The notes below the pieces were generated by a model that saw nothing but the letters and a program-made list of their open reading frames with translations, was not told the origin of the DNA and did no database searches. DNA of 63,871 nt, counting the filler, from Reticulomyxa filosa (taxonomy: Eukaryota > Protista > Foraminifera): NCBI GenBank assembly GCA_000512085.1. It is 30 parts of 30 records of this genome, joined end to end, with 100 filler letters (N's around TTAATTAATTAA, not from the genome) between each part and the next. Parts side by side here need not be neighbours in the genome. Positions count along the whole stretch, not along the records: positions 17,749 to 19,909 come from ASPP01038932.1; 29 more parts are not named here. The stretch is one strand, 5' to 3'. A program made the position numbers and the translations under genes. Every line of letters starts with the position of its first letter. The stretch's first letter is position 1. This document shows positions 7,758-21,759 of this stretch, piece after piece.

Positions 7758-8555
7758 ATGAAAATGAAATGAATAAATCAAAGGAATTAAACAAATTAAA
7801 CGATTACAATGAATGGTCTCCTTTCACAGACAATCACAATGACCCAATTATCATTGGAAGAGATGAAAATCACAATTATGAAGGAGTGCGTACAGTGATT
7901 GGTGGAATCAACAATCATTTGTTATTTATCACTTATTATGAAAATAATATTAGTGTGTTTGATTTAAATACATTTCAATTTATTAAACACGATAAATTAC
8001 CAACTAATAATTCAATACTTTGTCATTGACTTTATATCAAAATTAGAAAATGGACAAAACTATCAAATGCTGTTGTTTAAATATAATACAGGATTATCAA
8101 TTGAATATGATGACGATAATAGCACTTTTCAATTTCAGAAACTACCTGTTTGTCATGATATTGCACCATTCTATAAATATGCATATGTGTGTATCAATGA
8201 TGTAATCTTGTTCTTTGGTGGATGTGGTAATGATATTTCAAAATCAGTGTACAAGTATTCAATTCGAGAAAACAAATGGGTGACATTTGAAAACATTTTA
8301 CACAGTCCATTATATAATTGTGTTGCAATATTGAGTGAAGACAACATGTTTGTGCATATTATTGGAGGATTAAATGCCAAATGTGAAAGTATATCAATAC
8401 ACATGAAAAGTGAAGTGAGTAAATGGCTAAGTAAAGAAGAAATGAAAAAAGGAATTGAATTGAAAGCGGAAGAAGAAAAAGAAGGAGAAGAAAAGGAAAA
8501 TGAAATGAAAACAATAGTAATAATAAAGAAGCAAACGAAGAACAAAACAAAATGA
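7758..8555 (+). pseudogene. Kelch-repeat (beta-propeller) protein fragment with a frameshift near 8029
   Basis: Kelch-type units VIGGINNH, ILFFGG...VYKYSIRENKW and VHIIGG. ORFs 7769-8029 and 8067-8555 are separated by an apparent 1-nt insertion (CH-C-FISKLENGQNYQM). Followed by a Glu/Lys-rich tail. Confidence 0.75.
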
Positions 8556-17648: not shown

Positions 17649-18264
17649 NNNNNNNNNNNNNNNNNNNNNNNNNNNNNNNNNNNNNNNNNNNNTTAATTAA
17701 TTAANNNNNNNNNNNNNNNNNNNNNNNNNNNNNNNNNNNNNNNNNNNNTTTCATGCACGGGACCAGAATTGATGATACGTCAAAAAAAAAAATGTTTTTT
17801 TTACGAATGCATAACTTGAAAAACGGGAGCGAAACTTGTTTTTTGATGATGTAGAAAAAATTTTTGTGCATTACTCAAACTTTTGTGCACTAGACAAATT
17901 TTTGTGCATTAGCCACGTTTCTGACGTAGAAATATCACAACATTTTTTTTTTGTTAGGTTAAACTTTGACACAGGCCAAAAAAGTTTAAAAGTTTACGAA
18001 TTTTTTTAATAATATCTTCGACGTACAAATCGGCTTTCAAAAAAGCTAGGAGCTCAAAGGCCGTCAAATAAAATTAATTTTTTTTGAAACGTTTCCCCCC
18101 CTTGGTACTGTCCATACGCAAAAAAAAACAAACAAGGCGAAAAAGCCGCCAAATACTCATACCAAAATGTGGTTTTAGTTTTTTTTAAAAAATTAATTAA
18201 GTCCGTAGTGCTATCTACTGTTCACTTGCACGGACACGTTTTCCCTTCCAAGCGCACAAATGCA

Positions 18265-19405
18265 TCAAATCCAGGCCTCGAAGACGCCATTGATGGTGAC
18301 AATGAGGAAGATGAGTTCAGCAAAGTTGACAGAATATCTCAGGAAGCCTTTGAAAACATAAATGTAAATGAAAGTGTATAAAAGTAAAATAAATGTATGT
18401 ATTAAAAAAAATACATAATACCTCCAATTCCGCCAAAACATTTAACAAATTGAGCATCTCTTGTGAGCGATCAGTAACAAATTATAGTTTACATCCATAA
18501 TTTTTATATTGTGAAGCAAACCATTCAAGAAATTGATCTTATTGAACAATTTCCCAAATAAGACCAGTATCTTTAGATGTAATATAAATTTCTTTTTTTT
18601 GATGATTTATATTCTTAAAAGATCAAGATTTTCTCAAATAATACAAGTTTGTAAAGCACCCATTTCCATAGCATGAATAATATCACGATAATCAAAACAA
18701 TATTTATTAGTATCTTTAGCAATTTCTTGCATAAAATCCATTAATTTAACATTAGCTAAAGCATCTTTACTTTAATTCAATAGATTGATTAAAAATGATT
18801 TATTTAATAGTGATATTTTAGATTGTAGATTAAAATCTATTGTTATTAAAATTGTTGATACTTCTTATGGTGGTGAAAATGGTTTTAAAATTAGCACTAC
18901 CAGCTAATACTAAACCTTTTATATTAGGTAAATCATTTATTATAAAATGTTGTGTACATAATTATGTCTTTTTTCCATACGTAATCTAGCAAAATGTACT
19001 GTAAATTTTTGTAATATATTATATATACTACCAGATAATGTACATCAATTATTATAAAATCAAATATATCATCACTTTATAATAATTCATTTAATGGTTC
19101 TACATGAAATTTATTATAACATAAATATAATGATGTATTTATAGATTTAAATGGTTCAAAATGTATTCACATTTTTTTTTTTCTTTTCCATTATCTGTTG
19201 ATAATCTATTTACTCTAGATTTTATATTTGAAGCTGTTCCATGTTCATCTTGTATCATTTTTTGTATTCTTGATATTTGATCTTTTGGTGGTATTACTAA
19301 TGATATCATAGAAGTTCCATTACCACGTGATTGTGATAAGTGTTTAATTAAAGTTTTTATTTTCCATTGTTCAACAAGTGAAGCATCTATTGGTTTTTTT
19401 GACAT
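18265..19405 (-). pseudogene. eRF1: Eukaryotic peptide chain release factor 1 pseudogene with two micro-inversions and several deletions
   Basis: [61 protein letters not shown], (inverted) [28 protein letters not shown], intron 18348-18421, then GFLRY. The GGQ loop is deleted and there are several TAA/TGA stops. Confidence 0.95.
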
Positions 19406-21759
19406 TTTTTTAAAAAAAATTAAAAAGTATTTTTTTTTTGAAACAGAGGAATCCCCAGTATTACATCCAATACTATCCCATATTAATATATTTTTTTTAA
19501 TAAAAGTATTTTTTAAAAAAATTAAAAAATAATAATCAAAAAGAATCAACAAAATTTTTATCTTCATTTTTCTTGTAAACTATCCAGCTGTTTGTAGAGA
19601 AAGATACCTTGAGATATTATTTCATTTTCATCCAAATTTTATTCAAATTTTAACAAGTTTTTTATCCATTCACTTGAGTGTAGGGCAAGATCCTATAAAT
19701 ATCTGAACCTTGAAGGAACCCAACTAACTTCACTTACTCTTTTGTTTTTATTTTCTTCTTTTTTTACCGAATACTGGTTTACTGAGTAAAACCCTTTTCG
19801 TATTACATTTAGTATAACCTCTTCCAGCTGACGTCCCACATGAGTTCAAATTATAAAATAATATTTTCATTATGTGAGAAAATGTTGTTTAATTCAATTA
19901 AAAAAAAAANNNNNNNNNNNNNNNNNNNNNNNNNNNNNNNNNNNNNNNNNNNNTTAATTAATTAANNNNNNNNNNNNNNNNNNNNNNNNNNNNNNNNNNN
20001 NNNNNNNNNTTAATAAACAATAACACAATAACGAAAATCTTTCTATTTTTTTTTTTTCAGCGTATCTGAATAGTTTGACTTAGATTATTATGGAGGAATC
20101 AATCAATTATTTTTGTTGATTGTAATATGATATAAAATAAAAATCTTGTCACGTATTTTGAACAGTCAACAAATAAAAAGGCAATGATAGACCAGAAACG
20201 ATCATTTTTGATTAGTTTGTCGTTTCCTAGTTTGAGTGTGATTTCATCTTTAAACAAAGAATTTTGACTTATAATACATTTAAACACACGTTTGTAGTTG
20301 AAAAAAAAGGTTCCCTCGTTCATATGGAAATTCTCCTGTAATTAGTAAGGCATTGACTACAATGATGTACAAATTTATTTTATTTTGATTTGTATGAAAT
20401 ATAAAATGAATTATTTTTCCTCTAAAAAATACAAATTAAAAATCGAGGAGTAATTTATGGTCACCTAATTACGAGCTATTCAAAAAACCACAAACGATGT
20501 TTTTATTTAAGGTTATGTCTTTTAAATTTTTTTGAAATTATTGATATAAAGCATTGATAAGTTTGAAAGAAAAAGTTCAAATATAGGTCCTTTCAATAAA
20601 ATCGGTAAACTTCTATCAGGCCAATCTGAGGACATAGAAGCAGCACAAAATCTCTACAATTACTCTGCAGTCGAATTGTTTTATAACGTCGCAAAGAAAA
20701 GAAACACTAAAAGGTAAAGAAATACTAAAGTGTGTTACTCTGTTTAAAAGAAGGAATTAAAATTACTTGTTGTGCAAAAAAAATGTGTACGTTATTGGAT
20801 TTACTATTGTTCAGAGCAAAAACTATACAAATCATTTGGTCTCTGATACGGTGCTGCGTATATTGATTTACAATAAAAAAAATTAACATTTGTATTTCGA
20901 AGGAAGAATTTATCATTTGTTTTGTTTTTAAAAGACAATACATTTTAAGAAAAAAAAAAATCAAGTGAAACAACTAAAGCTCAATTTTTTTAATAATACG
21001 TATAATTTAATGATTTTTTTTTAGCTCATGTGCAAATATAAATTTGTTGAATTTCATTAATGAACAGTTTTTTTTTAGCTAGCTTTTTAATCTAAAAAAA
21101 CTCTTTGTGCTTCCCATCACAAAACCGTGAGAAATAGTAGAGACAAATGACAATCCCAAAATTATAACGATTTGGCTACGTGTTCTTTCTCCTAAAACTC
21201 AAGACAATAACTTTTCTTGGTTTTTTTGTATCACATTGCCACTGTGGTTTTCTTTGGTTGGTTTTCATTTTTCTTGTAAGAAGCTGATGACTCAGTAAAT
21301 ACAGNNNNNNNNNNNNNNNNNNNNNNNNNNNNNNNNNNNNNNNNNNNNTTAATTAATTAANNNNNNNNNNNNNNNNNNNNNNNNNNNNNNNNNNNNNNNN
21401 NNNNTTTTTTTTTTTTTTTAGAAAGATGAAGAGATCACTTTCTCTAACGTGTGGAAATTTTCGTCAAGAATTCGATACAATTTCCTATGTTCCTCATCCC
21501 CCACCCGGTGATTACACCAATTCAATCCAAAGAGCTTAAGTCAGCAACATCAGTGCTTAAGTTCCATTGGCATGAAATGTGGTTGCTCACACATTCTCAG
21601 GACAATCTACGTCCATTTTGCTGTGAATATGAACGCTCGACACCTGCAGCAATTATGTGAAGCATTTAACAATATGCAAAAGGCGCTGATGGAGATAAGA
21701 CGATATCCCAGATGTCAAATTTATCGACGAAATCAAGAAACGAAAACAACAAGGAGTTT

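Follow-up and report, generated by a model that had tools for sequence, protein, structure and literature searches.

Two microinversions at short inverted repeats in an apparently dead eRF1 gene copy of the foraminifer Reticulomyxa filosa

The window analyzed here is a stretch of 63,871 nucleotides, filler included, from Reticulomyxa filosa, a freshwater foraminifer whose genome assembly is GCA_000512085.1 (PMC9231491). Positions 17749-19909 are one contig of it, ASPP01038932.1, in its full length of 2,161 bp. The assembly is highly fragmented, with 50,809 scaffolds, an N50 of 3.6 kb, a repeat content of 30%, and a mean intron length of 87 bp (PMC13746701). The contig carries on its minus strand a copy of the gene for the release factor eRF1, and we compared this copy with two paralogous loci, L007 on ASPP01021398.1 and L006 on ASPP01004452.1; the comparison of copies covers this one R. 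filosa assembly (2014). The principal features, with positions counted along the window, are these:

17753-18264, minus strand: 3' flank duplicated with the gene, aligning to L007 1446-1952 at 77% identity with many indels
18265-19408, minus strand: decayed eRF1 duplicate, a putative pseudogene, from ATG (19406-19408) to TGA (18265-18267), placed by Pfam, PDB eRF1, and L007 alignments
18277-18315, no strand assigned: inversion 2, 39 nt, a 33-nt spacer plus CTC/GAG arms, with the acidic C-terminal tail on the plus strand
18348-18421, minus strand: GT..AG intron of 74 nt between GGIGG and FLRYSVNF, from reading of the sequence and the L007 alignment
18789-18888, no strand assigned: inversion 1, 100 nt, an 88-nt spacer plus the 6-bp arms TTAAAA (18789-18794) and TTTTAA (18883-18888)

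The Pfam pieces found on the copy are colinear, comprising eRF1_1 positions 4-55 and 96-123; eRF1_2 positions 45-61, 66-94, and 89-121, the last of these on the plus strand; and eRF1_3 positions 8-43 and 88-104. The three domains of eRF1 (PF03463, PF03464, and PF03465) therefore occur in their proper order, and the alignments to eRF1 structures in the PDB agree with it. Once flipped, the copy is colinear with the intact eRF1 P0144 and with L007. The NIKS motif of stop-codon recognition is present, in a region aligned to human eRF1 residues 11-71. Scans of the gene flanks on the contig with Rfam, tRNA, and Pfam models returned nothing.

The paralogs were reached by a library-wide search with the N-terminal piece, all matches of which were compared with the contig by tblastn; this led to P0121, and a search with P0121 led to P0259. 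The latter is RFI_24941 at L007, a model of 424 residues in which the three eRF1 domains are all present. The minus strand of the ASPP01038932.1 copy is colinear with L007 from 19386 to 17753, through the gene (aligned to L007 positions 57-1445), the intron, and about 500 bp of 3' flank, save for two flips, and the coding sequences (CDS) share 88-89% nucleotide identity. The intron lies at the same position in both, with a length of 74 nt in the copy and 89 nt in L007, so the copy stems from duplication at the DNA level rather than from retroposition. RFI_24941 differs in having an uninterrupted open reading frame (ORF), GGQ, both inverted segments in coding orientation, and a third-position GC content (GC3) of 20.8%, whereas the ASPP01038932.1 copy has a GC3 of 4.8% and bears all the lesions.

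P0121, named 'eukaryotic release factor 1 [Reticulomyxa filosa]' and located at L006:7047-7985, is itself decayed and truncated: NIKS reads NIIS, GGQ reads CGQ, and there are two frameshifts. L006 has deletions of its own of 3, 15, and 30 nt, and its homology stops near 7975. RFI_24941 is the only eRF1 copy with an intact ORF that was found in the assembly, and it reads HIKS (CAC, within L007:187-230); the Asn of NIKS is kept in the ASPP01038932.1 copy (19214-19225), in L006 (NIIS), and in the related transcripts P0260 and P0261. Either HIKS is a sequencing error, or RFI_24941 is not the working gene, or the variant is real. On the assembled sequence, R. filosa has at least three eRF1 copies in differing states of decay. 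Glöckner and colleagues reportedly described the genome in 2014 as rich in amplifications, and at least three copies would fit such a genome.

The 3' flank has features of its own. A 19-bp unit, AAATTTTTGTGCATTACAC, is present in 2.8 copies at 17858-17911, and the homologous L007 flank has one copy; the ASPP01038932.1 copy has therefore gained 39 nt (17850-17888) by tandem duplication. The segment 17775-17845 matches L007:1880-1950 colinearly and also, reversed and at 74% identity, L007:2061-2129, about 180 bp further on. The two L007 segments thus form, within the flank, an inverted repeat some 70 bp long, which may be a small foldback element. A plus-strand similarity of 18133-18207 to the eRF1 N terminus (E 0.73) was set aside as chance, the region being colinear with the L007 3' flank.

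The first-pass annotation of this DNA had placed the eRF1 gene on the minus strand, as the Pfam and PDB alignments do, and had noted a conserved middle-domain block reading on the plus strand. That block is a 100-nt inversion, which is confirmed in the sequence far beyond chance. Its plus-strand translation corresponds to eRF1_2 positions 89-121 and human eRF1 residues 233-265, in the M-domain. The upstream minus-strand neighbor corresponds to eRF1_2 positions 66-94 (human eRF1 210-232), and the downstream neighbor reads NQSIEL and then enters eRF1_3. The ends of the segment, TTAAAA and TTTTAA, form the inverted repeat that had been described, exactly 6 bp long and without outward extension, in the arrangement TGGTAGTGCTAATT-TTAAAA-[88 nt]-TTTTAA-TCAA.

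When 18789-18888 was reverse-complemented in silico, which was the check that the annotation had proposed, tblastn with P0144 returned a single 63-residue HSP in one frame that crosses both junctions (18961-18773, 67% identity, 84.7 bits). The flipped DNA served local alignments only, and the database searches used the separate protein pieces. Comparison with L007 gives the same picture: 18888-18789 corresponds to L007 828-729 on the opposite strand over 100 nt, with 89% identity, no gaps, and colinear sequence on both sides. The further claim that the flip restores the frame with no base gained or lost is thereby borne out. Identity to L007 is 0.38 for the block as it stands and 0.89 for the flipped block, and L007 already has the two arms. 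The block is also colinear in L006, where the far junction has been lost to the 30-nt deletion private to that locus.

The gene contains 116 segments bounded by inverted repeats with arms of at least 6 bp. Flipping inversion 1 changes the score of a frameshift-tolerant eRF1 alignment by +123, compared with a median of -52 over the 116, and the other flips that raise the score are only sub-segments of the inversion 1 block or overlaps with it. The 6-bp arms are themselves significant, since they would rarely occur by chance: there are about 116 such segments among roughly 1.8e5 possible ones, the latter figure being an estimate. The block begins and finishes with the palindrome TTAA; that these ends reflect cuts with compatible ends is an idea only.

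A second inversion, absent from the first-pass annotation, which held the 100-bp segment only, lies in the acidic C-terminal tail. It was predicted from the composition of the tail before the comparison with L007 was made. The C-terminal tail is hydrophobic on the minus strand. Of 4,234 windows of 15 residues taken from the six frames of the contig, only one is acidic, and it lies opposite this tail on the plus strand. In the L007 alignment, 18315-18277 corresponds to L007 1433-1395 on the opposite strand over 39 nt, 85% identical and without gaps, with colinear flanks; identity is 0.46 as the segment stands and 0.85 when it is flipped. The arrangement is GCTGAA-CTC-[33 nt]-GAG-GCCTGG, and the arms are CTCG/CGAG in L007. 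After the flip, the tail reads AELEDAIDGDNEEDEAWI up to the stop, compared with AELEDALDVDNDEDEAWI up to the stop in L007. Arms of 3-4 bp would be met a few percent of the time by chance and are weak evidence by themselves.

These two segments, of 100 nt and 39 nt, are the only parts of the copy that align to L007 on the opposite strand. Each is a reverse complement in place, with nothing gained or lost, and in each case the arms (TTAAAA/TTTTAA and CTCG/CGAG) are found in the un-inverted sequence of L007. A third candidate flip, 18529-18553, was rejected. It has perfect 7-bp arms (GAAATTG/CAATTTC) around an 11-nt loop and spans the TAA at 18539-18541; a flip abolishes the stop, yet the segment then falls out of register and the alignment score does not rise, and L007 is colinear there, with CAA mutated to TAA in the copy.

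Could the inversions have arisen in the laboratory, by template switching in vitro at the same inverted repeats or from chimeric reads in a low-coverage contig? The contig is short (2.1 kb) and unplaced in a fragmented assembly, no other contig in the protein index has the same ORF, and some frameshifts of 1-2 nt fall within an A-run or close to one (A11 at 19172-19182), as homopolymer errors would. Nevertheless, no assembler would be misled by arms as short as 6 bp and 3-4 bp, and two balanced inversions require four exact junctions. The inverted block of inversion 1 bears the copy's own substitutions at the density of its flanks, its divergence from L007 (11%) matching that of the surrounding CDS (11-12%), so the block is native to this copy and not a mis-joined read from L007 or L006. 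A truly decayed locus, in which such lesions are expected, is also indicated by the six stops and the numerous deletions of several bases. A library or assembly artefact therefore appears unlikely, though we would still leave it a small share of the probability.

The remaining lesions were mapped by alignment to L007 and, for the two largest deletions, to eRF1 as well:

19198/19199, minus strand: junction of a 93-nt in-frame deletion, 31 residues lost
18996/18997, minus strand: junction of a 42-nt deletion, GGQ loop lost
18459-19044, minus strand: six more CDS deletion junctions and one insertion, given singly in the next seven lines
19043/19044, minus strand: 19-nt deletion
18955/18956, minus strand: 22-nt deletion
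18744/18745, minus strand: 21-nt deletion
18603/18604, minus strand: 16-nt deletion
18569/18570, minus strand: 36-nt deletion
18459/18460, minus strand: 1-nt deletion
18773, minus strand: insertion of one A
19181-19182, minus strand: insertion of two A in an A-run
18482-19169, minus strand: six in-frame stops by codon comparison with L007, given in the next four lines
19167-19169, minus strand: stop, TCA to TGA
19077-19079, minus strand: stop, GAA to TAA
18634-18636, minus strand: stop, TGG to TGA
18607-18609, 18539-18541, and 18482-18484, minus strand: stops, L007 codons CAA, CAA, and GAA to TAA

Relative to L007, then, the CDS has eight deletions (93, 19, 42, 22, 21, 16, 36, and 1 nt), two small insertions, and six in-frame stops. 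The 42-nt deletion takes out ELPKKHGRGGQSSV, and with it the GGQ motif of peptidyl-tRNA hydrolysis. In L006 the segment lost here lies between two perfect copies of a 5-nt direct repeat, CAGTA, the second of which is CAGTG in L007; the 22-nt deletion has a TAC microhomology or repeat in L006, and the other deletion junctions are without microhomology. A search of the rest of the contig in six frames for the missing eRF1 segments found none; in comparison with L007 and L006, these are plain deletions. A variant genetic code, with TAA read as Gln or Glu and TGA as Trp, was rejected as an explanation of the stops: they face TCA, GAA, TGG, CAA, CAA, and GAA in L007, and the frameshifts and deletions would remain.

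The lesions also bear on whether the inversions are programmed or reversible, either as an invertible switch or as a germline gene that is unscrambled in somatic nuclei with the 6-bp repeats as pointers. In the scrambled genes of ciliates, coding segments destined for the macronucleus are inverted between short repeats, which form the microhomology at the junctions. The exactness of the flip, the pointer-like length of the inverted repeats, and the TTAA palindrome at both ends of the block would suit such a scheme. After both flips, however, six stops, several frameshifts, and all eight deletions persist, including that of the GGQ loop, and no uninterrupted reading frame is obtained. Unlike a ciliate scrambled gene, the copy has no intervening DNA of the eliminated type between its segments and no extra bases at the junctions, it is not restored by unscrambling, and a processed version was not found; the paralog with an intact ORF differs at 12% of sites and so is not a processed version of this copy. 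Nor does the 2.1-kb contig hold a nearby recombinase or the longer arms of a site-specific switch, as its only Pfam domains are those of eRF1 and the arms are only 6 bp. We give a programmed rearrangement almost no credence. With stops, frameshifts, and deletions left after both flips, the copy is to all appearances an eRF1-family pseudogene, dead in either orientation.

The history of the copy can be followed from its divergence. Against the L007 CDS, at 11-12% divergence, dN/dS is about 0.19 and dS 0.44, figures that average over all of the divergence; such a ratio suggests that most of the divergence accrued in a working gene. The lineage was probably functional for some time and then lost its function. 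With L008 as the outgroup, a related transcript from a Logan assembly that encodes P0260 (89% identical to P0259), the tree (L007,(ASPP01038932.1 copy,L006)) is favored by 19 sites, compared to 4 and 1 for the alternatives, making the copy and L006 sisters. These two share no gaps, which indicates that they decayed independently.

Base composition differs strongly among the copies. In the region aligned four ways, GC3 is 3.6% in the ASPP01038932.1 copy, 6.8% in L006, 19% in L007, and 44% in L008. The changes specific to the ASPP01038932.1 copy are nearly all GC to AT, those specific to L007 are nearly all AT to GC, and the CDS of the copy is more AT-rich than its own flanks. An extreme AT bias at silent sites is known in foraminifera (PMC11980380). 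An origin of this AT-rich eRF1 from a giant virus was rejected, since relatives in IMG/VR reach only 56-58% identity, compared to 78-82% for cellular eRF1 and 88% at the DNA level for the R. filosa paralogs.

A single complex replicative event, with serial template switching of the MMBIR/FoSTeS type (MMBIR, microhomology-mediated break-induced replication), could in principle have produced the duplicate, its deletions, and both inversions at once. The structural lesions are dense, with eight deletions and two inversions in 1.2 kb, and some junctions show microhomology, namely the CAGTA direct repeat, the TAC repeat in L006, and the arms of the inversions. Against this, several deletion junctions lack microhomology, the sister copy L006 gathered deletions of its own independently, and a balanced flip of a spacer usually points to a local event at inverted repeats. 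The six stops and the strong load of GC-to-AT substitutions indicate a long neutral decay, with time for lesions to be added stepwise, and a single event is accordingly possible but unnecessary; we regard it as very improbable.

The reading that we prefer, and hold to be very probably correct, is that the ASPP01038932.1 copy is a dead duplicate of eRF1 made at the DNA level, comprising gene, intron, and 3' flank, in which two microinversions at inverted repeats have no function. In each inversion the spacer has been turned around between short inverted arms, which the un-inverted gene already possessed. Going by the anatomy only, such flips most likely came from intramolecular template switching at the arms during replication or, alternatively, from the repair by MMBIR of a break inside the spacer. 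The inversions are without function and represent ordinary mutational damage, not a switch.

Close parallels are found among known microinversions. Inverted repeats flank every one of the 59 definite (stringently defined) microinversions between human and chimpanzee, for which Potapova, Kondrashov and Mirkin in 2022 proposed template switching or MMBIR as the cause (PMC8755829). Like those, the R. filosa events are exact reverse complements in place with no gain or loss. The primate events measure 17-33 nt, whereas the smaller R. filosa event measures 39 nt with a 33-nt spacer and the larger one 100 nt with an 88-nt spacer and arms of only 6 bp. Both lie in one 1.2-kb pseudogene, a local density far above that of the primate events. 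In yeast genes, spacers have been inverted through template switching between short inverted repeats (PMC8604942), and short mutation clusters caused by template switching are documented in human genomes (PMC5453318). There too the arms are kept and the spacer is inverted, and the result passes for clustered substitutions if one does not try the reverse complement (PMC8604942, PMC5453318). The yeast cases affect functional genes and change five neighboring residues at most (PMC8604942), whereas the R. filosa flips reverse 32 and 11 codons, and the gene was either dead beforehand or killed by the inversion.

The inversions belong to an already known and ordinary class of mutation, and as lesions in a dead gene copy they matter little by themselves. 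Even so, microinversion at very short inverted repeats is resolved here cleanly and in full, and a paralog of the same genome keeps the un-inverted arms. For annotation, flips of this kind break a gene or pseudogene into fragments on opposite strands and mimic clusters of substitutions.

The occurrence of two microinversions within one gene copy of about 1.2 kb, set against roughly 130 substitutions, is a modest point of interest. It is far above the expectation at the primate rate, and it means either an unusual mutation spectrum or grounds for caution. One tentative idea, which we consider doubtful, is that R. filosa, or its very AT-rich coding DNA, has a rate of spacer microinversion per substitution that is orders of magnitude higher than that of primates. 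If this were true, the amplified gene copies of R. filosa would decay and diversify in large part through template switching or MMBIR, and the pair of inversions seen in this 1.2-kb pseudogene would offer a first glimpse of such a spectrum. Should many such events prove to exist across the genome, they would give new insight into mutation in foraminiferal genomes.
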